Assembly (NCBI RefSeq): GCF_006345805.1
Contig: NC_043002.1
Location: 100,936,001 to 101,000,000 of the forward strand
DNA: 64,000 bases
Reading direction: 5' to 3'
Source: Octopus sinensis
Taxonomy: Eukaryota
The position numbers were made by a program, and so were the translations under genes. The notes below the pieces were generated by a model. The model made no database searches. It saw nothing but the letters and a program-made list of their open reading frames with translations, and was not told where the DNA came from. This document shows positions 496 through 48,099 of this stretch, in pieces; within the stretch, counting starts at the first letter, position 1, and each line of letters opens with the position of its first letter.

Positions 496-814
496 ATTAT
501 ATTTTTACAGTCTATATACATTACTCTTTTACTCGTTTCAGAAAGCCGAAGTCGGCTGCGGTCATACTGGTGCACCATCATATATTTTATTCTTTTGTTT
601 CAGACATGTGACTAAGGCTGCTCCGAAACAAAAGCATGGAATTTCATAGTCATCTCTAATATGTTTGCCAGAAAGATAGAGCTCGCTCTCCTACACGAAA
701 GTTAATACCCATTTCTTATTTATGTTCAACACAATCGAAATGAGTAAACTTCAAAATTCATAGTACACGTTTGGCAGCTGTTTTGACCCCTGTCGACAAC
801 GGCAGTATCTGGTA

Positions 815-11963: not shown

Positions 11964-11965
11964 TA

Positions 11966-12442: not shown

Positions 12443-12474
12443 GCATATATAGAAACTCCTTCTCCTTTACTTTT

Positions 12475-15504: not shown

Positions 15505-15523
15505 TGTCATTCTTATCCACTTC

Positions 15524-15656
15524 AGGTTTGGCACTGAGATATATTGTCAGCAGCTGTTTATTAGTATTGAAGATCTTACATTCAGTTATAGATACTCATT
15601 GTGTTCGCAGTCTTCATTCTTTTAAATTTCTTCACAGCTTTGTCCTTTTCGTATAC
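15524..15656 (+). other. Candidate non-coding exon 1 (5' UTR) of the Cys-rich secreted protein gene
   Basis: Non-repetitive, contains no ATG, ends at consensus donor AC|GTAAGT (15657); the ATG exon at 24842 has a splice acceptor, so an upstream exon is required. Confidence 0.4.
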
Positions 15657-15931
15657 GTAAGTGAACTTCTAAAATTATCTTATTTTTTAATGGAATTCGT
15701 ATGAAATATTTAAATGTTTGTTTTGCTTTATAACTCAGATATGATTTAAAAAATTGAATCTTTTCGTCAATGTGTTCATGTAGTACATAAATTTGGAAAC
15801 GTGTCTAATATAAAGTCATCTGAAAGTTTGTTGATTTTATTTTATTGGTAAAGAACAAAATATATGGTCTAAATCTAAAATAATTGTATTTTCTGTTTTT
15901 GGGTGTGAATATGTCCTATGTAATATCTATC

Positions 15932-16662: not shown

Positions 16663-16687
16663 AATAATAATAATAATAATAATAATG

Positions 16688-16761
<74 letters not shown>
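16663..16761 (+). repeat. (AAT)n run flanking Dong A1
   Basis: Directly visible. Confidence 0.95.

Positions 16762-16763
<2 letters not shown>

Positions 16764-18541: not shown

Positions 18542-18544
<3 letters not shown>
16762..18544 (+). mobile_element. R4/Dong-clade non-LTR element A1, 5'-truncated
   Basis: IFQGDTLSPLL, HLLYMDDLKLYA, CRIC..ETINHIISSC, RHD, RPDIVV and K..KY (CCHC plus restriction-like endonuclease); ends ..aaactactg then (AAT)n. Confidence 0.93.
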
Positions 18545-18629
<85 letters not shown>

Positions 18630-20118
18630 GATAAAACCAATGAAATAAAAGAATTAGACCAAACCAAACTTACAAATACTTAGGAATCCATGAACTAGAT
18701 AAGACACAACACACACAAATGAAAGAGAAAAAAAAAAAAAGAATATTATACACGAGTTAGATCAATACTAAAAACAGAGCTCAATGTTAAAAACAAGATA
18801 ATAGGTATCAACACTTTAGCTGTCCCAGTTATAAGTTACAGCTACAATATCCTTAACTGGACACTAAATGAACTGACCAAATAGATAGGAAAACAAGAAA
18901 AATACTGACAGGATCTAGGATGCATCACCCAAAATCTGACATAGAAAGACTATATATACAACGTATAGAAGGTGGTAGAGGCCTTATACAGCTGGATAAC
19001 TACTATAAAATAACCACCATAGGACTGCAAAAATACCTACTTCAGAAGGAAGGAAAACTGATCCAGATAGCAGCAAAACACGAGCAAAACAAAAAACTGT
19101 TCTCAGTATTTAAGGAAGCTGATAAATATAAACAAGAAATCATACCACCTAATAAACACAAAGAAGGAGAAGAAGATGATGAAGAAACAACAAAAGCTAT
19201 AAAACAAATGAAATCCAAACTAAAAATAGAACAGCAACGAACCATGATAAAACGATGGCAAGAAAAGCCCCTTCATGGTAAATACTGGACTAAACTAAAC
19301 GCAAAAGAAATAGACAAAGAAAAATCCCAGCAATGGTTGAGAAGCTCAGGACTCAAAGCAGAAACAGAGGGATTTTTAATTGCAGCACAAGACCAAAACC
19401 TCCCCACCAGAAATTACCAAAAACATGTAATGAAAAGAAATATTACAAGTAACTGCAGAATATGTGGAGATGGACAAGAAACAATAAATCATATTATCTC
19501 TAGCTGCCCAGTCCTGGCTAAGAAGGAATATATTCACAGACATGACAGAGATGGAACCTACATACATTGGAAGCTATGCCAACATTATGGAATAACAACA
19601 GAAAAACGATGGTATAGGCACACACCAGAAAAGGTCACAGAAAACGAGAAAGCAACCATACTCTGGGATATGCCGATACACACAGATAGAGAAATTAAGG
19701 CCAACAGACCAGATATAGTTGTCAGAGATCATGAAGAAAAAAATGCTTTCTAATTGATGTATCAATACCGGCAGATGACAACGTGTCTCTAAAAGAAATG
19801 GAGAAACTCTCAAAATACAAAGACCTGGAAATAGAGATAACTAGAATGTGGAACCTGAAAACAGAAACAATTCCTATCATAGTAGGTGCATTAGGCATGA
19901 TAAAAAAATATTCAGACAAATACATAATAAAAACACCAGGACTTACAAACACATATAACATACAGAAAATTGCACTACTAGGCACTGCACACATCCTACG
20001 CAGAACACTTTCCATACAATAACCATCAGAGCATCACAACAAATCACAGCACATACCCAAGGCACACAGAGCTGCGCTCGGTAGTGTAGTGAAAGCACCT
20101 ATAAAAATAAAACTACTG
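18630..20118 (+). mobile_element. R4/Dong-clade element A2, same subfamily as A1, different 5' truncation
   Basis: Near-identical to about 17055-18544; bounded by (AAT)n at 18545-18629 and 20119-20202. Confidence 0.93.
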
Positions 20119-24556: not shown

Positions 24557-24847
24557 TGATTGATTGATTGATTCTAGTTTCAGCTTATGAGCTGTGGCCA
24601 TGCTGGGGCACCGCATATATATATATATATACATATATGCAGGTAAATGTATTCACACATGCATTAATACACACACACAAACACACACACACAAACACAC
24701 ACACACACACACACACATAAGAACGCAAATATATACGTATAGCATTCACGCATTCGCGTATCTAGATGATTTGTTCCGCTTTCCTTTGAAATAGTAAACA
24801 GTTACCAGTTTAATCACCTCAAATTCCATTTGTTCTTCCAGATCAAT

Positions 24848-24920
24848 ATGACACGACTATTTCCTTTCTGTTTGCTGATTTCGACTGCATTTAAAGTTGA
24901 TATGACATTAGCCGATCCCG
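24848..24920 (+). CDS. Coding exon 1 (exon 24842-24920) of a small secreted Cys-rich protein: MTRLFPFCLLISTAFKVDMTLADP
   Basis: Acceptor ccatttgttcttccAG (24840-41), A at -3 of the ATG, signal-peptide-like sequence, donor G|GTAAGT at 24921, phase 1 matching the next exon. Confidence 0.75.
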
Positions 24921-25417
24921 GTAAGTTTCCAATCATATATGAAAATGCATTTCTTGGGCACCAAATCGTTTCATCTATTCAATCGATCAGAGTTTTCGAG
25001 GCTTGATTGCCGATATTTGATTTCCATTGCTATGAATTGACTATATGAATGTATGTATCAATAAATACACAGACACACTCACACAGAAACACACACATAA
25101 GTAAGTAACGAAGGTGTACACGGGACACTTCATTACGGCCGTTTCAAGCGACTCCATTACTTGATTAAGGAAAATTATTGCTACTAATACCACCTTATTC
25201 AGCGACTTCAACTGCTTAAACTCCCAAGCTAATTTGTTATATCTGTCGACTTTTTTTTCTTCCTGATCGCATACCGTGTTGTCAGCTCGATCCAGCATCG
25301 TTTGTTTTCTATCTCAATTACCACTATGTCTCGTTTCCTTTTCTCTACCTCATGGACGCACTGAATCATAAAATCCCATAGGATCTTTGCATTATCATTT
25401 TGATTATTAGTATTATT

Positions 25418-25990
25418 TGTTTGACTTTTGTTTTGTATGTGTACATGTTGACTTCAAGTCTCACCCAGAGACCTCAAGAAACAACAAGTTAGATGTTCAT
25501 GTTGATGTTATGAAAAGGGTGTCATATATTTGGTTTTGGACATATATTGTTCTAGAGAATGTTTAAGGAAACAAAGAAAAATTATGAGTTTGTTTTAGAA
25601 TTTGAGATTACATAGACTGCATTTTACGTAGGATATGGTCAGTTCAAATGAGCACTATCTTTTGAATCTCTGCCATTTTGGGGTTTCCTGGTTTCTGAGA
25701 TAGTTGGTAATCAGCCCCTTTTGCTATCATTCCTCGGGCACCTATGACAACAGCTATTGTTTTAGTCCTGAGGTTCCACATTTTGCCAATTTCTATTTTA
25801 AGATCTTTATACTTGCTCAGTTTTTCGCAGGTTTTGACAGATATATTTATGTCGATTGGGACAGTCATACTCAGTTTGCAAATGACAAGCAAATTTGTGG
25901 TACTAAGCAGAGTATTTGCTGTAGCTCATCTTTTATACCACGACAAAATAATGAAAAAGACAACACTTCCAATCAGTTAAGATGAAAGCC
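25418..25990 (-). mobile_element. Dong subfamily B copy B0, older 3' fragment
   Basis: KTCEKLSKYKDLKIEIGKMW..VVIGARG; 3' UTR homologous to B1 and B2; degenerate ATT run at 25391-25417. Confidence 0.85.
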
Positions 25991-26052
25991 ATGAAAGCTA
26001 TGAAAGCTATTACCCGGTAATGCATCAGATTATTATTATTATTATTATTATG

Positions 26053-26091
<39 letters not shown>

Positions 26092-26092
<1 letters not shown>

Positions 26093-29000
26093 TATGTTTG
26101 ACTTTTGCTTTATATTTGTACAAGTTGGCTCCAAGTCTCACCCAAAGACCTCAAGAGACAACAGGTTGGAAGTTCATGTTGTTGTTATGCCTAGTGTGCC
26201 ATATATTTGGGGGAGGGGTGTTGTACTAATGAATGTCGAAAAAAGTTTTTTTTTAACCGAAAATTATGTTTGTTTTAAACCTTGAGATTACATAGAAAGT
26301 ATTTTGCGTAGGATATGAGCAGTTCCCATGAGCACTATCTTCTGAATTTCTGCCATTTTGGGGTTTCCTGGTATCTGAGTTAGGTAGCTATCAGCCCCTT
26401 TTGCTATCATTCCCAGGGCACCTATGACAACAGGTATTGTTTTAGTCTTCAGGTTCCATATTTTGCTGATTTCTATTTCAAGATCTTTATATTTGCTCAG
26501 TTTTTGGTAGGTCTTGACAGATACGTTTATATCGATTGGGACAGTCATATCAATGAGGAGGCATGTTCTTTGTTTGAAGTCTTTCAATATGATGTCTGGC
26601 ATATTTGCATCTATCTTTCTGTCAGTTTGAATGGTGAAGTTCCAGAGGAGTGAGGTGTGGTCATTTTCAAGCACTGGGGGTGGTTTGTGTTCCCACCAAT
26701 TTTTTTCGTGGGGCAAATCCAGGTTTTTGCAGATTACCCAGTGAATATATTGTGCAGCTCTATCGTGCCTGTTGAGATACTCTGTAGGCACTAGAAGACT
26801 GCACTTGGAGACCACACGATCAATGGTTTCATTTTGTTGCTGGCATACACGACACGTTGGACAGCTTCTGATCTTTAATATGTGGGCCTGGTGGTTTCTT
26901 GTTGGTAGGCATTGATCTTGAGCTGCTATGATAAACCCCTCTGTTTCAGATTTTAAGCCAGAGGCCATTAGCCATTGATGGGTCAGGGCTTTGTCAACAT
27001 CTGCATTATTTGCTCTCTTTGGGTATTTGCCATAGAGAGGTTTTTCTTGCCATTTATCATTCAGAATATCTAAGGCCGCAGATTTAGCACGGGTTTTCAT
27101 GCGCTTAGATTTTTCTGTGCCTGTTTCTTGTATGTCTATCTCTAATTGAGGCCAAATTGCATTCTGATGTCATCACTGAATTGTTTGACAATCGCTAGTA
27201 AGCCCTTGAGTTGTTGGTCATTTTTTGCAAAGAGTTTTAAATCATCCATGTAAATGAGATGATTTATATTTTTATCCAACATTTTATATTCGTATTGCGC
27301 GTTATTGAGCAATTTTGAGAGAGGTATTAAGGCTAAACAAAAGAGGAGTGGTGATAGTGAGTCACCCTGGAAAATGCCACATGAAATTTTTACGTCACCA
27401 GCATTTAGAGATTCATCGTCACTGTTCAAAGATTGTGTGGTTCTCCATGATCTCATACTTACGGACAAAATGTTTCACAGAGCAGGCGCTATTTTGTACA
27501 TTTCCAGGCATTTCTTTATCCAGCTATGTGGTAGGCTATCAAAAGACTTTTTATAGTCTATCCAGGCTATTGACAAGTTTTTGTGTCGTTTGTGACAATC
27601 TTCTAAGATCATCTTATTGATGAGTAGTTGATCTTTACAACCATAGGATCCACGTTTACATCCTTTCTGTTCATTAGGGAATATGCTGCTGTCTGTTAAA
27701 AAACTATAGGTATATTCCGTCAGGGCAGATGTTAGCGTTTTATACATAGTTGTTAAGCAAGTTATGGGTCTATAGGTTTTTGGTTCATTTCTTTCTTCAC
27801 TTTTTGGGAGCAAGAATGTTAACCCATTAACTAGCCAAGGAGGCATCCTACTAGGGTGTTGCACAACATCATTGTGATGTTCTGTTAGCAATTCATAGCT
27901 CTTTGGGAAGGCATTCAACCAGAAGTTAGGAACTTTATCCTTTTCTGGAGACTTCCATTTGCTTGACCTCCTGAGAGCAGATCTTACATCTACCTTGACA
28001 CCCTCCCACTTTTGCTCCTCTAAGGAGTACAAGTCCGTAGCTATTCTGTCAATCCAAGGGACCTTTTCGTTGTGTGTTTTTTCTTCTGCCCAAATTTTAT
28101 TCCAAAATCCCGGCATTTCTTCCTTTGATGGTACAGACATTACAGTAACTGGTGTTTTCCCTATCTTCCTGTAAAATATTTGGGGTTATTTTTGAACATG
28201 TTGTAGTCCTTGAAGAATCTAACACGCTTTTCATACCTCGCTATGTGGGCAGCTTTAGCAGATACCTTTTGCTTGATGGTTTCTATCGTGGCATCAATAT
28301 CAAGTATAGTTTTCATATATTTTGTCTTCAATTTTCGGGTTTTTGTAGGTTTGGTAGTCTTGTCAACCTTAAGGTTTTTCAAACATTCAATGTCATACCT
28401 AAGTAGTTTAATTTGATGTTGGATACGCTCTAGCCAAGAAGGCTTTTTGTGGGAATGTTGCCGTTTTCTAATTTTTTCACCTCATAGGATCGTTGATATT
28501 TTCACGGATGCATAGTACAAGTGGTTGAGATCTGTGATAGTAACATCATTAGCTGAAATTATATCCTTAAGTGCAAGGCGGATTTTACCAATTATTTTCA
28601 TGTTTTGGTTAGAGTTGCGGATTCTGGAGAGTGTATCGCGTTCATCCATATTGGTTTCTTTAAGTTTCAGCCATTCAATCAGGATTTCATTCTTTAGTTC
28701 ACGTAGTTCAGTTGGGTTAATATTTGTGTGACTTTCTTCTATTTGATGTTCATTTGTCTTAGTGTTAATGATTGGTTCAGTGAATATTTCACTTTACCTA
28801 TCAGTTATACTAGCTCTTTCAATCCTTACTGCGTTTTTATCAGCCCTGGGCTGGTCTATAATTATTTCCTTTGTATTATCTTTAACTGCGGCTTCGTTGT
28901 TTTTATCCGTTACTGCTTGTTTGATTTGATCAATCTCTACTTCAGTCAGTAATTTTTTTATAATGTTTCTTCTGACGTTGACAAGTTTGTTACTGCTTAT

Positions 29001-30318
29001 GTAGGGTCTTACTTCAGGGTGTTTCTGTCTCCAGTTTATGTAGGCTTGTATAGTGTTAGATTTATCTGTGGGGAAATATATGGCATGGTAGAAGGCCGTA
29101 AGAACTTCCTTATTATCTTCCCTAGTCCATTTTTCATTATTTTTCTTTTGGCTATTTGATGACGGGCATGGATGGCTATCTGATGGAATATTCCGGTTTT
29201 GGGGTACGACCAGCTCCTGTGTGTCGGGAAGATTTGAACCAGTGGCTGATTTTTTCAATCAGAATTTGGTTCAATGTTCGGGTTTGTGGTCTTTTGTAAA
29301 CCGATCGATGGCGATTGCGGTTTGTAATTTGTTTTGTTGACATTGAAGCATGACGAGCTTCGGCACTTAGATTAGGAGTCGGATCTGTCAGTTTAGGGTT
29401 AAGTTTTTGCGACGATACCGCCTCTGAATGTAAACATCGCTCGTAACGTAATTTCTTAAAGCTAGCAGATCTGTATTCGTCTGTATTATTTCTGTTGATA
29501 GATTTACCTTCGGACATAGTATTTTTGTGGTGTTTTTTAAACTTATGAAGGGTTCACTCTGTCTGTGTTAGTTCGAGAAAATGATAGTAAAATAAGAAGA
29601 AAACAAAAAGATCTGTCGGTTAAGGGTTAAGTTTATGCAGCGACACCGCCTCTGAATGTAAATATCACCCATAGCGTAATTTCTTAAGGCTAGCAGATCT
29701 GTATTCGTCTGTAATTTTTTATATTTATAATTTTGTTGTTTGTAGATTTACCTCCGGACAGAGTTTTTTTGGTTTTGTGGTGCTTTTTACCCTTATTAAA
29801 GGTTCACTCTGTCTGTGGTAGTTCTAAAATATGAGAATAAAATAAGAAGAAAAACAAAGAAGGTTTTGATTTTGTTTTTGCTTGGTTTGTGACAAGTATT
29901 TTCATGTGCGTGAGTGTGTGTGTCCAGTAAATTTCACTTAGTGTGTTCAACTTTGGGATGTATGTGTAGTCCTATGGGTACCAAAGTGCGTATATGATTG
30001 TGTAGACATTCGAGTGTATGCGTAATTACTCAATTTATGAACTCACTATTTTTTTTTATTTTGGTCCGTTTCTATTTTATTCTATGTAAACTTCCCGGTG
30101 TTGATATCGCGCGTGTGTTTCGCACATGTTTCATTGAGACACCGTGTGTAGGAGAAGCTGTACTTTGTTTGGCAGTAAAATTTCGTTTTTTTCCTTAGTG
30201 TCTTCGTTTAAAGGTCGCTTCCTTCAAGTTTTCCTCAGGTTCATTTATCTAATTCTATCGATGTTATTGGATTAGATCTGTTTTTGAATGGAGAGCCCGC
30301 TTTAGTACATCCATCTTG
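26092..30318 (-). mobile_element. Dong subfamily B copy B1, near full length with an internal deletion
   Basis: N-terminal Myb-like KWTREDNKEV; RT (YRPITCL, EQKGC, WIDYKKSFDS, GIFQGDSLSP, YMDDLKLF); CCHC; RHD; PDI..D..K endonuclease; (ATT)n on both sides (26029-26091, 30319-30401). Confidence 0.93.
29382..29859 (-). repeat. Two tandem units (228 and 250 bp) in the 5' region of Dong B1
   Basis: Units start gatctgtc at 29382 and 29610 and share ccgcctctgaatgtaaa, gctagcagatctgtattcgtctgta and ggttcactctgtctgtg. Confidence 0.9.
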
Positions 30319-30336
30319 TTATTATTATTATTATTA

Positions 30337-30401
<65 letters not shown>

Positions 30402-30402
<1 letters not shown>

Positions 30403-31537
30403 TATGTTTGACTTTTGCTTTATGTCTGTACAAGTTGGCTCCAAGTCTCACCCAGAGACCTCAAGAGACAACAGGTTGGAAGTTCACGTTGTTGTTATGC
30501 CTAGTGTGCCATATATTTGTTTTTTTTTGGTGTTGTACTAGTGAATGTCTAATACATAAAAAAAAGAAGTTTGTTTTAAACCTTGGGATTACATACACGA
30601 CATGTTGGGCTACTGCCGTTCTTTAATATGTTGGCCTGGTAGTTTCTTGTTGGTAGGCATTGATCTTGAGCTGCTATGATAAACCCTTCTGTTTCAGATT
30701 TTAAGCCAGAGGCCATTAGCCATTGATGGGTCAGGGCTTTGTCAATATCTGCATTATTCGCTCTCTTTGGGTATTTGCCATAGAGAAGTTTTTCTTGCCA
30801 TTTATTATTCAGAATATCTAAGGCCGCAGTTTTGGCACGGGTTTTCATGCGCATAGCTTTTTCTGTGCTTGTTTCTTGTATGTCTATCTCTAATTCCGAA
30901 ATTGGTTGTATTCGGAATTCACTTAGTTATTCCTTTGCCTGTTTTGTTACTGAGTATGATGCTTTCTTGTTTTCATGTTTTGAGACAAGTTTTAACATCC
31001 AGTCCTCAGACTTTTTCAGGTAGGTGTCTAGGCCAATTGTAGCAATCTTCGTTGTTATTGCCAGTTTCAAAAGACCACGGCCTCCCTCTTTTCTTGGCAG
31101 ATAAAGTCGTTCTGTATCTGCTTTAGGGTGGTGCATTCTATGCATTGTCAACAGTTTTCTTATTTTACTGTCGAGCTGACATATTTCAGTAATTGACCAG
31201 TTAACGATATTGAAACTGTAAGTCACGACTGGTATGGCTAATGCATTGATCGCTTCGATCCTGTTTCTTGCATTCAGCTCTGTCTGAGTATTACTCTTAC
31301 TCTGCGATAGCATTCTCTCCTGATCCTTTCCTTCATCTCTGAATGCCTTATTCCGTTCCCTTCACTTGTAGGCACTTGTAGCTCTCCGCTGGGTCTAGTT
31401 CTTTTATGACATTCTGCTGGTCAAAGTTAACGTTAGATGTTTCTGTCATTTTTTCTTTTGCACATTTATCGAGGCCGAATTGCATTCTGATGTCGTCACT
31501 GAATTGTTTGACTATCGCTAGTAAGCCCTTGAGTTGT
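30402..31537 (-). mobile_element. Dong subfamily B copy B2, 5'-truncated and internally deleted
   Basis: Same 3' UTR as B1; RLYLPRKEGGRGL; followed by (ATT)n 31537-31661. Confidence 0.92.
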
Positions 31538-31557
31538 TATTATTATTATTGTTATTA

Positions 31558-31594
<37 letters not shown>

Positions 31595-31625
31595 GATTAT
31601 TATTATTATTATTATTATTATTATG

Positions 31626-31662
<37 letters not shown>

Positions 31663-32053
31663 GCTTTCTTCTTCTTCTTATTATTATTTTTTAGCAAACA
31701 ACGCCTATACTGAAACCTGAAATCCAGTTTTTCTTATACGTTATGCGATATATCAGTTCACACCAAAACCTTTTGGTTTTCCCAAACCACGCCTTTGATT
31801 AGGAAAAACCGTTGTAGAAGCACGTACCTGTTCGTTGAATTGGTTTCAATATATTCTTCACACGTATTTGTTTTATGGAGGCAGAACTGAGAAAAGAGGT
31901 AAACGATATATGAATTAGAAGGAAGCCAAAATTATGATCTCGCTTGATATTATTGGAACCATCTTTACCTATGCTAACTTATAATAAATCTGTCTTGTAA
32001 AATATCTAATATTCGTTAGTGGAAACTATTACAATGTATGTATTTTTCTTTAG

Positions 32054-32194
32054 ATTGTCTGGGAGGATGTATCGACGACATTTATTTTTGCCGCGATTTT
32101 AAAGAAGAATGGTTGGAAAAGAAATCCAATATGTGTACCAAGAAAATATGCGACAAGTTTGATGGTGAACTGAAAATAAAGGTAAAAGGGTTCT
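32054..32194 (+). CDS. Coding exon 2 of the Cys-rich protein: (D)CLGGCIDDIYFCRDFKEEWLEKKSNMCTKKICDKFDGELKIKVKGF
   Basis: Acceptor tatttttctttAG (32052-53), donor T|GTAAGT at 32195, 141 nt, symmetric phase 1-1, open frame, Cys/Trp pattern repeated in the next exon. Confidence 0.85.
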
Positions 32195-32486
32195 GTAAGT
32201 CGACAAAAAAACAATTTCCTTTCTTCCCTTCACTGCGTGTTTAATGTATCAAAATCCCAACGAAGGTTTATATTAGCTTCGTTTTGAATGCGATATACGT
32301 TGTTCGGTAACTGTTAATTACTGTCCTTCTGCCAGCATTAATTGTGAATTTAATGGACCCTAGCTCCCACACGGTTATACCAACATCAGTAAACGACAGA
32401 TTCTTAGGTGATTGAACTTAAGTGACGAAATGTAACGTAATATAAACCAACAAAGTAGGGCTAGATGTGAGTGCGTAAAGAAATGT

Positions 32487-32873
32487 GGAATGAAAGCACT
32501 CCGTCGGTTACGACGACTAGGGTTCCGGTTGATCCGATCAACGGAACAGCCTGCTCGTAAAATTAACGTGTAAGTGGCTGAGCACTCCACAGACACGTGT
32601 ACCCTTAACGTAGTTCTCAGGGATATTCAGCGTGACACAGAGAGTGACAAGGCCGGCCCTTTGAAATACAGGTACAACAGAAACAGGAATTAAGAGTGAG
32701 AGAAAGTTGTGGTGAAAGAGTACAGCAAGGATCACCACCATCCCTGCCGGAGCCTCGTGAAGCTTTAGTTGTTTTCGCTCAATAAACACTCACAACGCCC
32801 GGTCTGGGAATCGAAACCACGATCCTACGACCGCGAGTCCGCTGCCCTAACCACTGGGCCATTGCGCCTCCAC
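32487..32873 (-). mobile_element. Full-length tRNA-derived SINE (same family as 12638-13020)
   Basis: Near-identical body; TSD cgtaaagaaatgt at 32474-86 and 32875-87. Confidence 0.9.
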
Positions 32874-32929
32874 ACGTAAAGAAATGTATCTAAATGACGC
32901 AAAGCATTTTGGAAGGCGCACTAACTTTT

Positions 32930-33075
32930 CTGGTGGGCTTAGCGGCATTTCTCCCGGATCCTGAACTTATATACCGCTAAGTTCAACTTTAACTTTTACT
33001 CCGTCAAGGTCGAAAATTGAGGTACTAGTTAAATACTGCAATCGCTGAAATTTACTGGTTGCATCCCCTCAAAAA
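32930..33075 (+). mobile_element. Old SINE fragment (8004 family)
   Basis: gcttagcggcatttc..gttcaa..ggtcgaaaa..aggtactagtt.aatactg. Confidence 0.5.
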
Positions 33076-33322
33076 TTGCTCGAATGAAAACCTGTAACGG
33101 ATATATCGCCCTTTCACGGTGATCTTGGTAATTTAAATGCCATGGAAACTGGGTAACCGGTGTTATGAATCCTTAGGCTAAAGACAAATAGAATAAATGT
33201 TTCTTATATTTCAATGCTTATCTTGAATTATAAGTTACCTGCCTAGAATGTTTGAAAGAATGAGCTTTTTTGAGAATTTTAAATCTATATTTTTATCTGT
33301 AGGTATCATCAGTTGACATCAG

Positions 33323-34575
33323 CACGAGGTTCCGCTCAAAAGGTCGTAGGCTTACTAAGATATATCCTCCTGGAATGTGAACAAATGAAGTTGGTTTCCC
33401 AGCATAGTTCCCCTTTCCATCAACACACTTATTCCATCGCTGCTGCAGTCATTGGATCCCATTGCTGAAAAAGCTTTTAGTCTTTTGGTCCAAAAGCCAT
33501 CAACAACATACATGATAGCACTTATCTACACAGCGACATGTTTTTACTTCATGTTCGAGAAGAGGTGAAAGTCGGATGGGGCGAAAATGGGGGAATAGAG
33601 AGGATGATCAACCAGTTCAAGGCCACATTCACAAGAGCCATTAAATGCTATGACTTGTGTGTTGGAGCAATATCCTGATGAATCATGTCCACTTTCTTCA
33701 ACTTTCTTTGGGCTGAAGTCTTGATAGCCTTTCGTAACCATCTCAACAAGTTGGCCTAGTACTTTCCATCAATGTTGCGTCCCTTTTGATGATAATCAAT
33801 AAAATTCTTGACATTTGCATTCCCAAATTTGAAGATTTCTCCTCCCTTGCAGATGAAAAAACGTTGTCATATTTGGAGTAGGCAATGTTGGGTGTCTCCA
33901 CAAAGCGGATTTTTTGTTTTTGCCTCATGCATTGTCTCATTATCTCTCCAAGTACTGAACCCAATACTACTCCTTGGTCAGGAAACGTTCAAAGAAACCA
34001 GCTGGGTGCGCCTCTAATAATGTCATATTTTCCTGTGATGATATGAGCCGGACCGACCAGATATCTTTGTTCCTGCAAAGTCCATCATGCAGAATATGCT
34101 CAAATCTCTCATGGTGAATGCGAATAGCATTGTTTATTTGAGTTATAGTCATTTGGCATTTAACCATCAGCATGTGGTGGACACAATCAATGTTTTCCTC
34201 AGTAATGGCAGCTGCAGGATCATCTTTACTGTTCTCTGTTACCCTCCTAAGTTCAGCTCACCACTTTTGTACTGTAAGTTGATAAAACATGGATGGTTAT
34301 CCACTAATGTAAGAATTGCTGGATTACCATGGAGGCTAAACCTTTTCTTCTGCAAGAACTTGATACTAGATTTTATCCATGTTCAAAGGAAGTCTCGACT
34401 TGTGAAAGTCTTCTTTGAATAGTCAGATTAGAGTCGACTTGAACGCCAAAGAAACAACAAAACAAACAGTTCACTCATTATTATGAAAAGTTGAAGTGGA
34501 TGCATGCAAAACTTCATAGCTCCAGGATCACTTATGAACAGGATCAGCCTATGAACATTTCAGCTTACGCGTGTA
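33323..34575 (-). mobile_element. Full-length decayed mariner with both TIRs
   Basis: HPLYSPIFAPSDFHLF (YSPDLAP motif); degenerate TIRs cacgagg..ctcaaaaggtcgtaggct and agcctatgaacatttcagc..cgcgtg; about 1.25 kb. Confidence 0.85.
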
Positions 34576-34778
34576 TGTGTACGCATCTCGAACATCAATG
34601 TTTGTTTACATAGCTGAAATTAATTGCACAAATGAGAACTAAAATTAGTCATTTAAAACATTAAATCCCTGATTTAATCTCAGAACTATCACCTCAATTC
34701 ATGCATACATACATACATACATACATACATACATACATACATACATACATACATACATACATGTATATATAGCAAAAA

Positions 34779-34816
34779 CTGTCCGACGAACGGGAACGTG
34801 AAACTCAGAGTAACAG
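34779..34816 (+). ncRNA. Minimal type I hammerhead motif H3 (same repeat family as H2; U4 to C)
   Basis: ctgt CCGACGA acg ggaa cgt GAAA ctcagag TA acag; all stems pair but the core has a substitution. Confidence 0.5.
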
Positions 34817-34906
34817 GTTTTGTTGGATTTTCTGCTGCTTTAAATAAAGTATATACATATATATTAATTGTGTATTATATACACAAGTATATTAAATATA
34901 TATATG

Positions 34907-34939
<33 letters not shown>

Positions 34940-35385
34940 GCATGTGAGTATGTGTGTGTATACATATATGTGTATGTGTAGATATGTATATGCATGTGTA
35001 TGTGTAAGTGTATATATATGTATATATATGTGTGTGTATGTATGTGTGTATGTATATGTATATATGTTTGTATGTGTGTGTATGTATGTATACATGTGTG
35101 CATAGGTATAAGTGAGAATCTCCTTATTTACCTAAAACTCTATCCCCCCTTTTTTTATATATAGGTTTTTTTGTTTTTTTTTATATATATAGGTTTTTTT
35201 ATTTTATTTTTTTATTTTTTATTTTTTTATTTTTTTATTTATTCTTCTATCTAATTTAACACTGACTCCTTGACCACTCCCCCAAGTATGATATTTTGTG
35301 CTATGCCTACCCCCAAAAAAGTCCCCCACCAACACCCCGTTAAACCTGCCTAAATGTATAAATGCCAATACAATTCTTGTTAACT

Positions 35386-35436
35386 AGCTTCCTGAAGATT
35401 TCTCTTGAATGAAACAGTTCTAGTCCTGTAGAAGCT
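35386..35436 (+). ncRNA. Type I hammerhead ribozyme motif H4
   Basis: agcttc CTGAAGA tttc tctt gaat GAAA cag ttctagtc ctg TA gaagct: 6-bp stem I, intact core, 3-bp stem II with a basal T-T, 4-bp stem III, GTA triplet. Confidence 0.75.
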
Positions 35437-35519
35437 CCTTCTATATAATAAATTAATTTTACTCTGCTATGTATTGAGTACCTTATTTACTGTGGTTAAC
35501 CCCGAATCAACCCGGGACC

Positions 35520-35589
<70 letters not shown>

Positions 35590-35601
35590 TATCTATGTAT
35601 G

Positions 35602-35639
<38 letters not shown>

Positions 35640-36094
35640 TAAAAATGGTAAAACAACAAAAGAAAGAGACCTCGATATTATGTAAATAGAGGAATTTATG
35701 TATAAATGTATCATGGCTACCGAGTAATTGTCACATATTACATTTCCAGATATATATATATATATATGAATTAGATATTAAATTTAATTTCGTACAACGA
35801 TCATTCCGACCCGTCCAGCTATTGTGTTTCATTGACTTTGAAGTCTGGATCTTATGAGGTATATTGATAAAGTTGTGATTCACTAAAGATCTTCAGTGTT
35901 GACTTATAAGATCTTCAATGTTATATATCCTTCTTATTATTTTATTCATTCCCTAATCAAGTAGATCCAGTATAAGTATGCCATGTCTGTGGATGACGAC
36001 AGATATACTAAACTGTGCAGGCGCTCTACCTAACATTTAAACACACTAATCGATTATATCTAATAGATTATATCTATACGTCCGAAACATTTAG

Positions 36095-36145
<51 letters not shown>

Positions 36146-36265
36146 GTGTTAGTTTAACGCTCCGGAAGTGAGAAAGTCTTTTACGTTTCGCGCCCACGCT
36201 CTTCGACAGAGAGGAACACAGAAATAAACAGGGAGAGAAAGTAGCAAAAGGTTTAGTGGCTAGCG

Positions 36266-36272
36266 ATATATC

Positions 36273-36357
<85 letters not shown>

Positions 36358-36387
36358 TGTGTGTGTATGTGTGTGTGTGTAGATAGT

Positions 36388-36445
<58 letters not shown>
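36266..36445. repeat. Compound (AT)n/(GT)n/(TAGA)n microsatellite
   Basis: Directly visible. Confidence 0.95.
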
Positions 36446-36446
<1 letters not shown>

Positions 36447-38111
36447 CTTGATTGATAGAAATAAGTTGAGGCAATCATTCAAGAAGAGATCAAGGATTAG
36501 TTACAATTGTTTCTGCACCAAATCTCCTTGCGACTCCAGTTACCGCAATAATCGAAATGAAGATATACGCAGTAGTTGCGCTTTTAGACATTAGTGTGGC
36601 ACCTCACAAGTCTTGCATCAAAGATGCGCCCTTACATTGCATGTCTCCACATCATATTATTTATTAATTTATATATTTTTGTTCATATTGAGAAAAAGTA
36701 AAAAAAGTATTCTTAGAACGGTCAGTCAGTACAACATCGTTACCGGTACCCAATAACATTATAACATTTCATGGGTGTATAATTATTTTAATTTACCTGA
36801 AGAGATAACGTTAGGCAGACACAAGGAAAGGCAGACGAGATTGATAACAAATACAAATAATTATAATGAGATGATATTTAGAATAACTAAAATTATAGGA
36901 ATAGTGACATATGTGTTGAGAGGGGATGATGTTGTTAGTAGGAGAATGTCATAAGCCATATGTTAGCAAGTAGACTTAGAATGTGATATGGTGAGACATA
37001 AAACTGAAAATGAAATGAAAAAGAAAGAAGGAAGCTAATGGGATGCGTATGCCTGAAGAGATTAAGCCCTAAAGATAAGTGAATTGATGTGAAATGAAAT
37101 AGAGAAATAAAGAAAATATAGGAAAAATAAATTCCCTATAAAATAAAGAAGAAACACAAACGGGAGTAAAATACATAAAGTGTTATGATTAGGAATTAAG
37201 AAAAGGAGATTATAATTAATAGAAGTAAAATGTTATATAAGTTATGCAGTGAGTTTTTAATACTTTATAAGTGGAGGAGTCGATAGAACGTAGAAAGTGA
37301 ATAATGATAGTTAGATATGAATAGGTGTATAAAAACCCTATAAAGGACACTGTAGAAAGACAAAAATTTCATAAAGTATACTAAATTTTTAATTAGTGAG
37401 AAAAAATACAAGTAAAATATCTATTAAAATTATGAATTATTAAAATATAATCTATAAAAAATATACTAAGAAATGGATAGTACGTTTAACCATTTAAAGA
37501 ATAAATGTTTAGAATCATCAGAATTTAATATACCATATAAATGATGCAATAAAATACTAATTTTCTTTTACTAAATTAAAGTGATCAGAGGTACTTTAAT
37601 TGCATAAGGTAGAAACACCATGAGATATTGATGTCAGTTTATAGTGTTCGGGTAAAATGTAGGTTTGAGTAACATATTATATAAAGATTATAATCTCAAA
37701 GATTAGAAATTCAGCGAATGGCAGAGTGAACAAATAAGTAAAGAAATAATTATAGAAATAAAAGAATTAAAATTCAAATAATTAACATATTTATATAATG
37801 ATGAAAATTTAGGATCAGCAGTTAAACTATAATATTAGTGATTTAATATGATTCTGTTATTCATAAATGGACTTTAAGAAATGTTAACTGAAAGTGCGGA
37901 GTATGGAATATAGAACAAATAGTATAGGTAAAGTCTTATACATGCGTGTACCCAGCCCGATGCATGTAGGCCCCACTCTCGTAGACATGCACATATATAG
38001 ACGTTCACAGACACACATTCATACATACAAAAGCATGACATACATACCCATACACACACCACGTACATACATATTCATATACACATGCATCTAAACACAC
38101 ACATACATACA

Positions 38112-38145
<34 letters not shown>

Positions 38146-38682
38146 GATATACACAAACATGTATATATGTACACACAGATACATACACACATGTTTATAT
38201 AAGTATATGCAGATATACACAAATAGGTGCATATGTACAAACACATGCATACATACAAAAACGCATGTATATATACACACACACATGAGCACATCCTCAT
38301 TTACACATAAGTACTTACATACATACACATAGCAGAATACAAATATATTTAGACATTTATATGTATAAATATTCGTATAGTATCAATAATACAGTGATTG
38401 TTTCTTATTAGGAATAAAATGTTTAATAGGACTGCTATAGAAGTGCTCAATTGAATGAGACAAATATATCAAACTAAGGTTACAGAACAAACAAACAAAT
38501 GCAGGGTCATCCACATAACATTTCATATCTCGAACATTTAATCATAGAATATACATTTATGATATCACAGAAGATGAAACATACCTCATCTGTACAAGCA
38601 TATCAGAAAGTGCGTATATGTATATATACAGTCATACATTTGCTTCCCTCATACAACCACATGTATATATATATATATATAT

Positions 38683-38908
38683 GTTCGAATCTCAGACGGA
38701 GCGACGTGTGTGTTTATGAGGGAAACATCCAAGCTCCACGCAGATCACGCAGAAAGTAATGGCGAAATTCTGCTGAGTGTTTCGCCGCAACATTCTCTCC
38801 CTCGTTCCTCCTACATCTAGCAGCTCACTTGCGACAGACTTGCCTCCAGTCCAGGTGGGGACCTATACCCCAACGACACCGAAAAACCGGCCCTAATGAG
38901 CCAGGCAT
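38683..38908 (+). mobile_element. 5'-truncated tRNA-derived SINE with V-domain-like core
   Basis: B box gttcgaatc; gtttatgag.gaaaca..aagctccacg shared with the 12638 family; gcgacagacttgcctccagtccaggtg resembles the V-SINE domain. Confidence 0.65.
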
Positions 38909-38912
38909 TATC

Positions 38913-39002
<90 letters not shown>

Positions 39003-39057
39003 CTGTGTGTGTGTATGTGTGTGTGTGTGTGTGTGTGTTGTGTGTGTGTGTGAGTGT

Positions 39058-39097
<40 letters not shown>

Positions 39098-39224
39098 GGA
39101 AGCAGAGTGAGCGGTTGGAATAAGTATATCAATTACCTAAGTTAACCCTGGGCATGGGTATGCAAGCAAACTATGCTCATATGGTACAGGTAATAACAGA
39201 ATAAACAAAAGTTTATAAGGAATC

Positions 39225-39622
39225 AAACTTAAAATATGCAGAAAATGGAGAAAACTTTTCATCACCAAACAAACAAATTAACCAACATCGGTTACTTATT
39301 ATTTAATACAAAACTTTAACATTGTTTACGAACGTTTCGACTACCAATGTCAGTTGGTACCTACAAAGAAAATTCCGAAAATAGTATTTGTCCTCCTTAT
39401 AGCATGTTCTACTCTGATGAAGCTCTATGTACTATATCAGATGTGCTATAAAGATGACGAATATTATTTTCGGAATTTTGTTTGTAGGCACCGACTTATA
39501 TTGGTAGCCGAAACGGCCGTAAGTAATGTTAAGTTTTGTATTAAAAAATAATTAACCGATGCTGGTCAATTTCTTTGTTCGTTGGTCAAAAAGCTTCTCC
39601 ATTTTCTGCTTATTTTTAGTTT
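39225..39622. repeat. Fold-back: ~180-bp inverted arms (39225-39404 / 39444-39622) with a 39-nt spacer
   Basis: Arms align along their length (gcagaaaatggag ... attccgaaaata ... ttatagca). Confidence 0.92.
39410..39525 (+). ncRNA. Type I hammerhead motif H5 spanning the fold-back spacer and right arm
   Basis: tact CTGATGA agct ...(about 80 nt)... agcc GAAA cggccg TA agta; palindromic stem III, 4-bp stem I, A-C mismatch at the base of stem II. Confidence 0.65.
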
Positions 39623-39624
39623 AT

Positions 39625-39681
<57 letters not shown>

Positions 39682-40017
39682 TATACACATATATACAATA
39701 TATATAAATATATATAAATATATATACATAAATATTCCAGGAATTTCATTAAACTTGAATATTTTTTTCTATCTCTGAATTATTTTTCTGGAGTATAAAA
39801 AACTTACTTCAGTATCTTGTATACTTTGCTTTTCAGCAAAGCCCGACTTCACCGTCAACCAGCAGTCCAATATCAGCTTTTCAGTTTTCTGCTTTGTTTC
39901 CTTCTTATGCGTCCTCACGCCACTTGCTTCTATTCCCTTATACTTAATTGTAATCGACTTACCCGGTTACCTGAAATCGCTGACCTTTTGTCAAAGATTT
40001 AGCCCAGTATAGGCACA

Positions 40018-40220
40018 ATACTCTAGGCACAAAGCCCGAAATTTTGGGGGAGAGGCCAGTCGATTAGAGCGACTCCAGTACGCAACAGGTACCTAATTTG
40101 TCAAGCCCAAAAGATGAAAGCAAAGTCGACCTCGGCGGAATTTGAACTCAGAACATAAAGACAGACGAAATACCACTACGCATTTTACCCGTCGTGCTAC
40201 CGTTTCGGCCAGCTCTCCGC
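40018..40220 (-). mobile_element. tRNA-derived SINE (8004 family, monomer)
   Basis: Reverse complement gives the head gcggagagctggccgaaacggtagc, gttcaaattccgccgaggtcgactttgc and the tail gggctttgtgcctagag. Confidence 0.85.
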
Positions 40221-40293
40221 TTTAGTATAGACACAATTTTGTCATAGAAATAGTTGTAATAGAATAATCAATATATTTTCTTATCAACAACAG

Positions 40294-40444
40294 ATTGTTT
40301 GTTGCATGATGGAAAATGTGCCTCTCGAAGCACAAAATGGGCTATATTCTCGGAAACCGGGACTTGCTACCGTTACACCTGCACCTATAAAGGAATTTTA
40401 AGCGTTAGTGCCATGAAGAAAAATGTCGGAAAATGTTTACCTAA
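40294..40444 (+). CDS. Coding exon 3 of the Cys-rich protein: (Y)CLLHDGKCASRSTKWAIFSETGTCYRYTCTYKGILSVSAMKKNVGKCLP
   Basis: Acceptor tattttcttatcaacaacAG (40292-93), donor AA|GTGAGT at 40445, 151 nt, phase 1 in and 2 out; repeats the C-x6-C-x6-W-x7/8-C-x4-C module of the previous exon. Confidence 0.85.
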
Positions 40445-40676
40445 GTGAGTATATATCCGAAGTTATTTAATTTTGCCCATATATTACATTTTCTCACTAT
40501 CATTGTTACGTTGTCCTTGTAACAACATTTCCTCTTCAGTTCTAAATTTAGTTAGCTCAAACTTAGAAATGAAAATACAAATCTTAGCATTTCCAGCTGA
40601 AAGTTAATACTGTTAAAATTCTTATTGTTTTAATGTCTAGAATATGTCTGTTTTTTTCTTTTTTTCTTTTTGCCAG

Positions 40677-40710
40677 GGAATCCCTTACCAAACTGCTTTC
40701 TATTTCTTAA
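40677..40710 (+). CDS. Probable last coding exon: (K)ESLTKLLSIS*
   Basis: Long T-rich tract ending gccAG (40675-76) after a 232-nt intron; phase 2 compatible; stop TAA 40708-10; nearest AATAAA at 41016. Confidence 0.6.
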
Positions 40711-40877: not shown

Positions 40878-40975
<98 letters not shown>

Positions 40976-41118
40976 TATTGTTATATTTCGGAATGGTCAT
41001 ATTGCCAGTTTAGCCAATAAAAACACACGTACTATATATTTGGTGTTATTTTGCTTCAGTGTTATTTATTTTTTACATTAATCTTAATCTTATTTCGTCA
41101 CACTCCTATATTTAAACG

Positions 41119-41181
<63 letters not shown>

Positions 41182-41553
41182 ATATGTATATGTATATATA
41201 AGAAATAATTAAGGCTCTGTTGCATTAGGTACTTAAGTTCAGGCACCAAGTCAGTCCGATATTATCTGCACAGTTCGAAGTAAGGTGAATTAGAAGCCAA
41301 TAAGTAACAAGAATGTCAAGCTATTAGTGCATTACAGCCGTTTCAGGCGGCTCCATTTAATCGACCAATGCAAACATCACATAAATTTGAAAAATACCGT
41401 CTTCCACAGATACAACAAACAGGATATTCCATTACAATTTTTTTAGCAAATTTTCCATCACAACTAGAGTACAAAAGAATTACATGCTTGTTGCTATAAT
41501 TGTAATAGAATGAATTTATGGAGAAAATATCCCAACTATAATTTGGAGTGGCA

Positions 41554-41967
41554 GAAGAGAATGACAATGGGGGTCATGAGATGGTAATATAGCTACATTT
41601 ATCTATCTCCTTATCACCATCAAAATCTCTAATGCAGCTAATATTCCACGTCCACTAAGAATTAAAACGACTGAGAATTGAGAGTCACGTTCTAGTTGCC
41701 GATGATAAATTAATTAATGTCAGATATTCTTCCCTACCCGTAATATACTGTGGCTATATAATTGCTATAAAGGAACAAGTCTCAGAAGATGTCAGTAAGA
41801 TAGGTGTATATCCCCAGAAAGAGGGAGGGTGATGGGGACAGAAACTATCTTAATATTATCAGTTGAAACGAGCCTAAAATAGAAGAGAAAGGAGGTCACA
41901 ATGAAATCTACATAGGCATTTAGGGTAAAGGGGGAAATTTATATCCAAAACTTAGCAACATTTATAT
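41554..41967. repeat. Unclassified ~420-bp interspersed repeat, copy 2
   Basis: Homologous to 74-495, same orientation. Confidence 0.8.
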
Positions 41968-42854
41968 ATCATTATTTTTATAATCCGTATATATATAAAA
42001 TTTTATATGGCAATACTCTCACACTCTAGGAGTGTCATCATGTAATTCCGCATTGTGTCTCAGTACTCGAAGTATAACAGTAAAACCTTCGACGAAGTAA
42101 TTTATAAATGGTTTCTCTTTAACACTGTTTCAGTTTTATCCTTTCACATTTAATAGATTTACTATGCATATATATATATATATACATGTATACATATATG
42201 CGTGTACATATATGTATGTATATATGGAGATATATATATATACATACATGTATGTATAATGTATATATGTATAAATATATATAATTATGTATGTGTAAAT
42301 ATATGTAAATATGTATGAATGTATATGTATATATATGTGCATATGTGTATGAGTATGTATATCTCTCATAGTGAGTGTGTCTTTCTGCATTACGTGCGCT
42401 GATATCCACATACACATATCTACACATACGTTTACATATGTAACGACATGCGTGAATGTATGACTTTGTGAGGTTATCTTAGTATATGCATTTCAGTATA
42501 TGTCAGGCACATTTTATACCACAACGATGACGACGACGCCACATTCTCTATATGAGTGTACACCCGTCTGTGAGAGTATGCGTGTGTGTCTAGGTGGCTG
42601 CTTGTTCCCGCATTACGTACGTTATTAAACGTACACACAACATCTACACATACATATGCATATGTTACGACTGACATGTATGTGAGATCTAGAATTGAAA
42701 CTCTTGAAAAAAATCAAACGAGGTGGCAAGGTCCCAGGTATACATAAATATACCCATTTACTGTTCCATTATCAGTTAGTAATTATCGCAGGTGTTGAAG
42801 GGCTGCAAGGTGTTTGCAATTACATATCTACATTGACATTAAAAAAAACATTAT

Positions 42855-44200: not shown

Positions 44201-45359
44201 CAGGGCTTGGACAAAATAATGGAAGCACCTAGCATCATAGCATCATAATTTTGAAATATCTATAAAACCGTCAAAAGCTTGTTTACTTTTGTTTTTATTT
44301 ATTTATTATTACTGTTGCTTAATATGTTTTGCGGAAATTGCTGTTTCTCTTCAGATATCATTAAAATGACAGATCTATCAGACTTTCAAAGAAGTCAAAT
44401 TGTTGGTGCTCGTATGGCAGGTGACAGCGTAACGAAAACAGCCGAAATGTTTGGTGTATGAAGAAGTATGGTCTCGAAAGTAATGACACCCTTTCTCCGG
44501 AAGAAAACTAAAACTTTCAGATACGGACCATATTGTTAGAAGGGATCACAAAAGTACAGCTCCCAAAATTACTGCAGAGATTAATGACTACCTCATGAAC
44601 CCAGTTCGTACAAAAGCTGTTTGCCGGGAACTGCACAAAGGCGGATTTCACGGGAGGGCTGCAATCAGAAAACCATTATTTTCAAAAACGAACATGGAGT
44701 AAAACCTAAAGAATTGTTGGCTAGTGCAGTGGATGAATGTTATTTTCTCAGACAAATCATCCTTTACCTTATTTCCGACCACCGGCCGAGTATACATGTG
44801 GAGACAGCCAAAAGAAGCATTTGACGCAGACTGCCTTCTTTCAACTCTTAAACCAGGAGGGGGATCTCTGATGATCTCGGGGGCTGTATCTTGGAAATCC
44901 GCCAGCGCCATGATTTCCATTCATGGCAGAATTAATAGACAAGACTATTTAAGCACTTTATCTGATCAAATTCATCATATAGTTACTGAAGTGTTTCCGA
45001 AGAGAAAAGCAGTCTTTCAGGATCATAATACACAAATTCACACAGCTGAGGTTGTTACTGAATGGCACGAGGAACCTCTTATCTGGCCACCACAGTCCCC
45101 AGATATCAGTATTATCGAAAATTTAAGGGGCATGTTAGAAACACAAGTAAAGAATCGATATTCTCCATTATCATTCCACAAGAACTGGAGACTGTTTTAG
45201 CTGAAAATTCGACAAAATTCCTTTGGCAACAATTCAAACTTTGTACGAGTCCATACCTCGTAGAATTCAAGCAGTAATTACTACCAAAGGCGGTCCTACA
45301 CCTTATTAAAATAAATTTGTTTTAATTTTTAAGGCGTTTCCATTATTTTGTGAGCCCCG

Positions 45360-48095: not shown

Positions 48096-48099
48096 CAAT

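Follow-up and report, generated by a model that had tools for sequence, protein, structure and literature searches.

Does a stretch of Octopus sinensis DNA crowded with transposon debris hold a gene that the protein catalogues have missed and, if it does, to what kind of protein and family does that gene belong? The question was raised for 64,000 nucleotides (nt) of contig NC_043002.1 (RefSeq assembly GCF_006345805.1, positions 100,936,001 to 101,000,000 of the forward strand; this whole stretch, eukaryotic in composition with 36% G+C, is called the window below), in which a first-pass annotation made from the letters alone had proposed a four-exon spliced gene for a small secreted protein with two tandem modules of cysteines and tryptophan. 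We think it probable that the locus is a genuine octopus gene, in which three coding exons are certain and a short fourth is possible, and that it encodes a secreted, diversifying protein with ten cysteines. The gene appears to be an unannotated member of a small octopus family, and the kinship that the first-pass annotation had suggested, with VWC, fibronectin type I (FN1) or beta-microseminoprotein (MSMB) folds, is not borne out for it.

The gene, its relative and its tandem array

When the four plus-strand exons (coordinates in Table 1) were joined by script, the resulting 399 nt gave a 132-residue translation with no internal stops. Exon lengths of 73, 141, 151 and 34 nt set intron phases of 1, 1 and 2, the donors read GTAAGT, GTAAGT and GTGAGT, and all three introns terminate in AG; the proposed exons, splice sites, phases and frame were thus all reproduced on rejoining. 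Scored with a rough donor and acceptor weight matrix drawn from general knowledge, the donors fall between the 92nd and 99.9th percentile of the GT sites in the window and the acceptors between the 85th and 99.97th percentile of its AG sites, scores that appear good but are not decisive alone. The cysteine and tryptophan pattern described earlier is also present, as C30-x6-C37-x6-W44-x7-C52-x4-C57 in exon 2 and C73-x6-C80-x6-W87-x8-C96-x4-C101 in exon 3, and the addition of C26 and C119 brings the cysteines after the leader to ten. The strict motif occurs at two sites only in a six-frame reading of the whole 64 kb and at none in 30 block shuffles, and when the exon 2 and exon 3 peptides were shuffled their five-position register of cysteines and tryptophan was matched in 16 of 20,000 trials (P = 8e-4). 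It is no chance pattern.

The splicing of exons 1 to 3 is upheld because a search baited with exon 3 alone found a relative that aligns along the whole spliced model. With the exon 3 translation as query, phmmer returned a single match among 1.84 billion protein representatives (E 1.2e-9), falling on residues 69-117 of a 129-residue protein that is RefSeq XP_052825017.1, "uncharacterized protein LOC128248175", of Octopus bimaculoides. The full model aligns with this protein from Met1 (BLASTP, 63/125 identities, 50%, E 7e-43), crossing the junctions of exons 1/2 and 2/3, with all ten mature cysteines and both tryptophans in register. At the O. bimaculoides locus (CM046606.1:106,998,605-107,028,227, here L001) the coding exons of LOC128248175 lie at 10001-10067, 13774-13908, 18479-18629 and 19587-19623; they measure 67, 135, 151 and 37 nt, have phases of 1, 1 and 2, and place their introns at the positions seen in the window gene. 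Exon 2 shares 67% identity with its 135-nt counterpart at equal phases, and the ATG, reading frame, donor and phase of exon 1 are kept both in exon 1 of LOC128248175 and at L001 29414-29486. Taken with the splice model, these comparisons make it very probable that the gene is real as far as exons 1 to 3 are concerned.

The two proteins are alike in leader peptide, four-exon layout, phases, ten cysteines, both tryptophans and 50% identity over the full length. They differ in charge, the mature part of the O. bimaculoides protein being acidic (isoelectric point 5.2) and the window protein basic (8.8), in an N-terminal C-x2-C where the window protein has C-x3-C, in an unrelated C-terminal tail drawn from another terminal exon ~960 nt 3' of exon 3, and in half of the residues outside the scaffold.

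Beyond this relative the catalogues returned nothing. XP_052825017.1 is alone in its 90%-identity cluster and has no Pfam domain. A word-indexed protein search with the 132 residues gave no match, because the window protein and XP_052825017.1 share too few exact 5-mers, and word-indexed searches with XP_052825017.1 or with a three-member family profile found no protein beyond XP_052825017.1 itself. Metagenome contigs scanned with the family profile gave no match. A tblastn search of the window, in which the queries were the model, its exons one by one and the relative, added no exon of the family; a terminal exon at the 5' edge came from DNA alignment. Literature searches for LOC128248175, XP_052825017 and Octo-SAP yielded no papers. 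The egg-case proteins of Sepia (PMC4500399), also considered, are unrelated proteins of 70 kDa. The gene is missing from the catalogues, with no exact or near-identical protein among ~15 billion, and the earlier suggestion that it may be confined to a lineage is borne out by the single relative among the 1.84 billion representatives.

Collinearity places the gene in an array. By blastn, window positions 73-15915 are collinear with L001 19047-26544, which lies 3' of LOC128248175, and positions 24734-25046 match L001 29301-29623, both at 83-87% identity. L001 29414 begins an open exon 1 (MTRLFPFCLLIWATLKVHMTVADK) with a GTAAGT donor and the phase of the window gene. From this collinearity and the open exon we therefore take the window gene to correspond to the gene that follows LOC128248175 on its downstream side. 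The introns of the window gene and LOC128248175 can be aligned over much of their length at 75-87%; the two genes arose by whole-gene duplication and belong to an array in which at least three paralogues stand head to tail. One of these reaches into the 5' edge of the window with its terminal coding exon (Table 1), which has its acceptor at 595-603, flanks ~90% identical to O. bimaculoides, and a diverged tail (HVTKAAPKQKHGIS before the stop vs QVIEDTQNKTA before the stop, with a 13-bp indel); the rest of that paralogue extends past the window's 5' end. Another copy is represented in O. bimaculoides, upstream of LOC128248175, by an exon 3 at L001 1998-2140, which keeps the five cysteines, has tyrosine in place of tryptophan, a one-codon deletion and a TAA right after the last cysteine, and still has a GTGAGT donor 8 nt beyond that stop; no protein for this third copy was found in databases. 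Within the window, the stretches 3' of each tandem gene (73-521 vs 41553-41996) are 85% identical, a level equal to that between window and O. bimaculoides (83-84%), and the duplication unit therefore reaches beyond the genes. Identity between the window and L001 (83-87%) is no higher than that between the two flank copies within the window.

The ends of the protein are less settled than its core. The leader has a basic n-region and a hydrophobic core of ~12 residues, in keeping with the hydrophobic N-terminal signal sequence first proposed; the cleavage after TLA that went with that proposal is doubtful. Sites that satisfy the (-3,-1) rule follow residue 14 (STA before F) and residue 22 (TLA before D) in the window protein, and residues 14 and 16 only in the paralogue XP_052825017.1. 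Because the paralogue lacks the TLA segment, cleavage near residue 14, a site that both proteins share, is the family-consistent guess, and the leader is most likely a signal peptide cut there and not at residue 22.

At the other end, exon 3 closes with CCT AA before its GTGAGT donor, so that retention of intron 3 would bring an immediate TGA and a 122-residue product ending in GKCLPK. The acceptor of exon 4 ranks 2nd of the 3467 AG sites in the window (rough matrix), and three paralogues have conserved both the exon 4 segment and this acceptor; the RefSeq model of LOC128248175 skips the homologous segment, in which the stop TAA reads CAA, and all six of the codon differences (6/6) alter the amino acid. 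Exon 4 is therefore possible as a terminal coding exon, a candidate that would give a product of 132 and not 122 residues. The tail after the last cysteine appears to be unconstrained, because exon 4 and the terminal exon of the upstream paralogue, with its 13-bp indel, have both diverged. The ten-cysteine core is unaffected by the choice.

Mode of evolution of the family

Divergence between the paralogues is weighted towards amino acid change. By the Nei-Gojobori method, exons 1-3 of the window gene and LOC128248175 differ by 0.325 at nonsynonymous sites (dN) and 0.191 at synonymous sites (dS), a ratio (omega) of 1.7 that becomes 1.8 for the mature part, and three pairwise comparisons of exon 3 gave an omega of 1.4-2.0. 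The exons, at 72-82% identity, are no better conserved than their flanks (70-94%). Outside the scaffold, residues change faster than either synonymous sites or the flanking introns.

Whether so divergent a frame could have stayed open by neutral drift was examined by simulation, in which random substitutions were introduced into 121 codons at the observed divergence of 24.5% in 200,000 trials. The frame stayed open in 3.1% of the trials and all ten cysteines and two tryptophans survived in 0.009%; an open frame together with all 12 scaffold residues was obtained in 0/200,000. The third paralogue has likewise kept the five cysteines of exon 3, with its tyrosine for tryptophan. The scaffold of cysteines and tryptophans and the reading frame are under clear constraint, beyond neutral expectation, and the pattern fits a disulfide framework that stays fixed under a surface that changes fast; it is not that of a pseudogene. 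The first-pass annotation had named a dN/dS near 1 as a sign against the gene. That yardstick would mislead here, because the scaffold is strongly constrained despite an omega of ~1.7.

Fold, rival readings and possible use

Searches for a known family gave no answer above threshold. Neither the full nor the mature sequence of either member has a match above threshold in Pfam, and VWC (PF00093) and fibronectin type I (PF00039) give none at E <= 10 with full or mature sequences of either member. PDB sequences searched with either the protein or the family profile gave chance matches only, so the earlier statement that no family can be assigned stands. The sole Pfam family to surface at all was the fungal protease inhibitor family AmFPI-1 (PF12190), at 14.4-14.6 bits against a cut-off of 25 bits (E ~0.05-0.06, profile positions 14-84 of 91); the score is below threshold and the paralogue XP_052825017.1 has no match, and we take it as a chance likeness between cysteine-rich sequences. 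The modules of exons 2 and 3 show no similarity to each other past the spacing of their cysteines and tryptophan (BLASTP E 6.6; hhalign P 0.13, probability 0.5%).

Structure was predicted with AlphaFold2 for the paralogue, the alignment consisting of the two window fragments, and in a second run for the mature core alone. Confidence was low in both, with a mean predicted local distance difference test score (pLDDT) of 55 in the first run and 64 for the core, for which the predicted template-modelling score (pTM) was 0.51. Both models have the same topology, a helix of ~18 residues at the exon 2 motif followed by four long antiparallel strands. In these low-confidence models the first strand is still encoded by exon 2, and the helix contains the tryptophan of exon 2, a strand the tryptophan of exon 3. 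Foldseek found no significant match in PDB for either model. The first model drew matches of hotdog and NTF2 type, and the core model drew fetuin-B (E 0.05, probability 0.96), a secreted cystatin of Fasciola (E 0.17, TM 0.47-0.49 over 95 columns) and several monellins, its top matches overall having E 0.05-0.2 and TM 0.37-0.49. A helix-on-sheet domain like that of cystatin and monellin is what the core model suggests, as a lead only.

The comparison with MSMB needs more care, as the resemblance of habit is close. Members of that family have ten cysteines and four exons, stand in lineage-specific tandem arrays and have introns conserved as well as or better than their exons; a squid member acts as a pheromone, and the fold is all-beta, with a Greek-key N-domain and a four-stranded C-domain (PMC3268785). 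Like MSMB, PSP94, MSMP and USM (Loligo beta-MSP included), the octopus proteins are secreted proteins of ~10-12 kDa with ten cysteines, four exons and tandem arrays, and like them they change rapidly in amino acid sequence and keep only the signal peptide and cysteines. Unlike them, they share no sequence similarity with that family, map exons to domains in another way, and are predicted to contain a long helix (models at pLDDT 55-64) where MSMB is all-beta (PMC3268785). PSP94 (PF05825) gave no match at E <= 10 for either member; the family profile missed the MSMB chains 3IX0, 2IZ3, 1XHH, 2IZ4, 6RWC and 6IMF, all of which were in the PDB set searched and served as a control; hhalign against human MSMB reached 1% probability; and the Foldseek top 50 for the two models included no MSMB entry. 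Successive cysteines are spaced 3/6/14/4/15/6/15/4/17 in the octopus protein and 15/18/2/1/6/0/13/8/13 in human MSMB (C2, C18, C37, C40, C42, C49, C50, C64, C73 and C87, its sequence checked against 3IX0), and the C-x2-C-x-C and CC doublet of MSMB are absent from the octopus protein. By these comparisons the octopus family appears to be no MSMB, and by analogy it may still work like one.

These results bear on four other ways of reading the locus, two of which concern the kind of protein. It could consist of two tandem, homologous modules of VWC, FN1 or beta-microseminoprotein type that arose by exon duplication and act like the squid pheromone. The spacing common to both exons beyond shuffling speaks for this, as do the phases (exon 2 runs from phase 1 to phase 1 and exon 3 begins in phase 1, compatible with exon duplication), the sole stretch aligned by hhalign, which is in register with the last two cysteines of each module, and an evolutionary style shared with MSMB (PMC3268785). 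The modules have no residue similarity, however; VWC, fn1 and PSP94 are without a Pfam match and MSMB is without a match in PDB sequences or a credible hhalign score; the MSMB cysteine pattern is missing; exons and predicted structural units do not coincide, the first strand coming from exon 2; and the tryptophan is a tyrosine in the third paralogue. We accordingly set aside both the homologous tandem pair and the VWC, FN1 or beta-microseminoprotein kinship of the first-pass annotation, and regard this reading as improbable. Scarcely more probable is a tight-binding protease inhibitor of cystatin or monellin fold, comparable to fetuin-B acting on astacin or cystatin on papain-like enzymes, or else a cathelin-like antimicrobial carrier. 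The helix and four long antiparallel strands of the core model and its best Foldseek matches point that way, the predicted likeness to cystatin, monellin and fetuin-B extending to a secreted, disulfide-bonded protein of ~100 residues, and type-2 cystatins fit in size, signal peptide and disulfides. Yet all of those matches have E >= 0.05 and TM < 0.5 and come from a low-confidence model, and the first model gave hotdog and NTF2-type matches instead. Cystatin (PF00031) and Cathelicidin Pfam models match neither member, and inspection of both sequences finds neither Gln-x-Val-x-Gly (QxVxG) in hairpin 1, predicted here as K-W-D-D-G-G-C / L-L-H-D-G-K-C, nor Pro-Trp (PW) in hairpin 2. Cystatins have two or three disulfides against the five proposed here, and we know of none with five so spaced.

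The other two readings deny a working gene. A decaying or never-expressed tandem duplicate, its omega of ~1 or more reflecting relaxed constraint, would agree with an omega that is not below 1, with a gene missing from protein catalogues, and with C-terminal tails that differ, one O. bimaculoides paralogue having a stop after the last cysteine and having lost its tryptophan. It is very unlikely, given a frame intact over 121 diverged codons, 12/12 scaffold residues kept where the simulation expected next to no survival of the set and none jointly with the frame, splice sites and phases that are all conserved, and an exon 1 that is open in the O. bimaculoides counterpart too, with an identical donor. 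Chance open frames and splice-like sites in AT-rich DNA, with no gene at all, would account for short open frames and GTRAGT hexamers, which are common at 36% G+C, and for acceptors of exons 2 and 3 that reach only the 85th-88th percentile of a crude matrix; an independently annotated protein of another genome that aligns throughout, with introns at equal positions, and a motif found nowhere else in the window reduce this explanation to a negligible one.

We return, then, to a genuine, diversifying octopus gene. Its precursor of 122-132 residues has a hydrophobic leader followed by a mature part of ~100 residues, ten cysteines and ~11.5-12.5 kDa, and a secreted, disulfide-rich and lineage-restricted product is supported by the sequence comparisons. 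The ten cysteines would pair into five disulfides, locking the protein into one compact domain, predicted as one helix packed against a four-stranded antiparallel sheet. Once secreted, the protein would act as a binding or recognition ligand, its rigid scaffold showing a fast-diversifying surface, and a co-evolving extracellular interface would drive the change of that surface, as it does in other secreted families that have duplicated in tandem.

Several points weigh against this account. The excess of omega over 1, set against synonymous sites alone, is not significant (Fisher P 0.07-0.09), and the firmer contrast between 26.4% nonsynonymous divergence and 16.9% at 1,034 aligned flanking-intron positions (P = 4e-4) may be biased by gene conversion or by the use of alignable parts only. 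Both structural models are of low confidence, the pairing of the cysteines is one that we infer, and the leader and its cleavage site are read from the (-3,-1) rule. The exact 132-residue product is not among the ~15 billion catalogued proteins, and its relative XP_052825017.1 is itself only a computed RefSeq model.

As to use, we tentatively put first a role in chemical or reproductive signalling specific to a species or sex, in which the protein might be functionally analogous to beta-microseminoprotein; a part in saliva or venom, and binding or protease inhibition in mucosa or immunity, are each possible, a little less so, and some other use is unlikely, if only slightly more so than these. 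A bolder version, which we consider doubtful, would make this an octopod-specific family with an undescribed five-disulfide alpha+beta fold, whose members would be positively selected contact chemosignals or effectors directed at prey or pathogens. If true, the family would be an independently evolved functional counterpart of the squid beta-microseminoprotein pheromone.

Surroundings of the locus and significance

Table 1. Features of the gene and its array in the window (positions count from the first letter of the 64,000-nt stretch)
Feature	Position	Strand	Basis
Terminal coding exon of the paralogue upstream in the array (corresponds to LOC128248175 exon 4)	604..649	+	Aligned to L001 19440-19800; collinearity
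Conserved segment 5' of the start codon, candidate core promoter/5' untranslated region	24780..24847	+	Three-way alignment of window, O. bimaculoides counterpart and LOC128248175
Coding exon 1: ATG and putative signal peptide (MTRLFPFCLLISTAFKVDMTLADP, plus 1 base), donor GTAAGT, phase 1	24848..24920	+	
Intron 1, 7.1 kb, with antisense long interspersed element (LINE) reverse-transcriptase fragments inside	24921..32053	+	
Coding exon 2 (141 nt; enters and leaves in phase 1), bearing Trp44 and five Cys; helix, then first strand, predicted	32054..32194	+	
Intron 2, 8.1 kb, with short interspersed element (SINE) inserted at ~32487-32874 and 13-bp target-site duplication	32195..40293	+	
Coding exon 3 (151 nt; enters in phase 1, leaves in phase 2), bearing Trp87 and five Cys; beta-strands predicted	40294..40444	+	
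In-frame TGA, stop if intron 3 is retained	40446..40448	+	Read from sequence
Candidate exon 4 (ESLTKLLSIS, stop TAA)	40677..40710	+	Very strong acceptor
Candidate polyadenylation signal, first canonical AATAAA 3' of either candidate stop	41016..41021	+	

Just upstream of the ATG, an AG at 24840-24841, 6 nt 5' of the start codon, is kept in 3/3 copies compared and may be the acceptor of an intron in the 5' untranslated region. Long (TA)n and (CA/GT)n microsatellites lie at 24670-24720, just 5' of exon 1, and at 40880-40980 and 41120-41200 in the putative 3' untranslated region; a (CA)n tract is also found 5' of exon 1 of LOC128248175.

The SINE-like repeat of intron 2, ~380 bp long and in minus orientation, has on either side a 13-bp target-site duplication without mismatch, CGTAAAGAAATGT (32474-32486 and 32875-32887), and has a second copy in the window at 12644-13020. 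Intron 2 of LOC128248175 contains the same element, turned the other way, and the insertion there is therefore an independent one. ARAGORN and Rfam found no tRNA and no RNA family in the SINE, and Rfam and tRNA scans of the whole window gave no match. Degraded fragments of non-LTR (long terminal repeat) retrotransposons, with RVT_1, zf-RVT and Exo_endo_phos_2 domains, lie at 26288-31313 (-), where they occupy much of intron 1 antisense to the gene, and at 16685-19753 (+), 46789-48098 (-) and 60707-61704 (+). A Helitron_like_N fragment at 3395-3790 (+) falls within a 3.5-kb stretch (784-4332) missing from the collinear O. bimaculoides DNA, and a DDE_3 transposase fragment of Tc1/mariner type lies at 44724-45200 (+).

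The find is a modest one, an orphan family with no new principle so far, of a sort frequent in cephalopod genomes, where taxon-restricted secreted families rich in cysteine are common. It adds one gene to the annotation of an octopus genome, and it carries two cautions for that work: short genes of three or four exons with transposon-filled introns of 7-8 kb get missed, and a dN/dS near or above 1 is no evidence against function in families of this kind. What had been a lone "uncharacterized LOC" entry proves to be a single copy within a family of secreted ten-cysteine proteins that is arrayed in tandem, evolves fast and has no relatives detected elsewhere. A fixed disulfide scaffold, a variable surface and local duplication are the usual setting of pheromones, toxins, reproductive proteins and immune effectors, and the locus is therefore a candidate for the chemical ecology of cephalopods and possibly for a new small disulfide fold.

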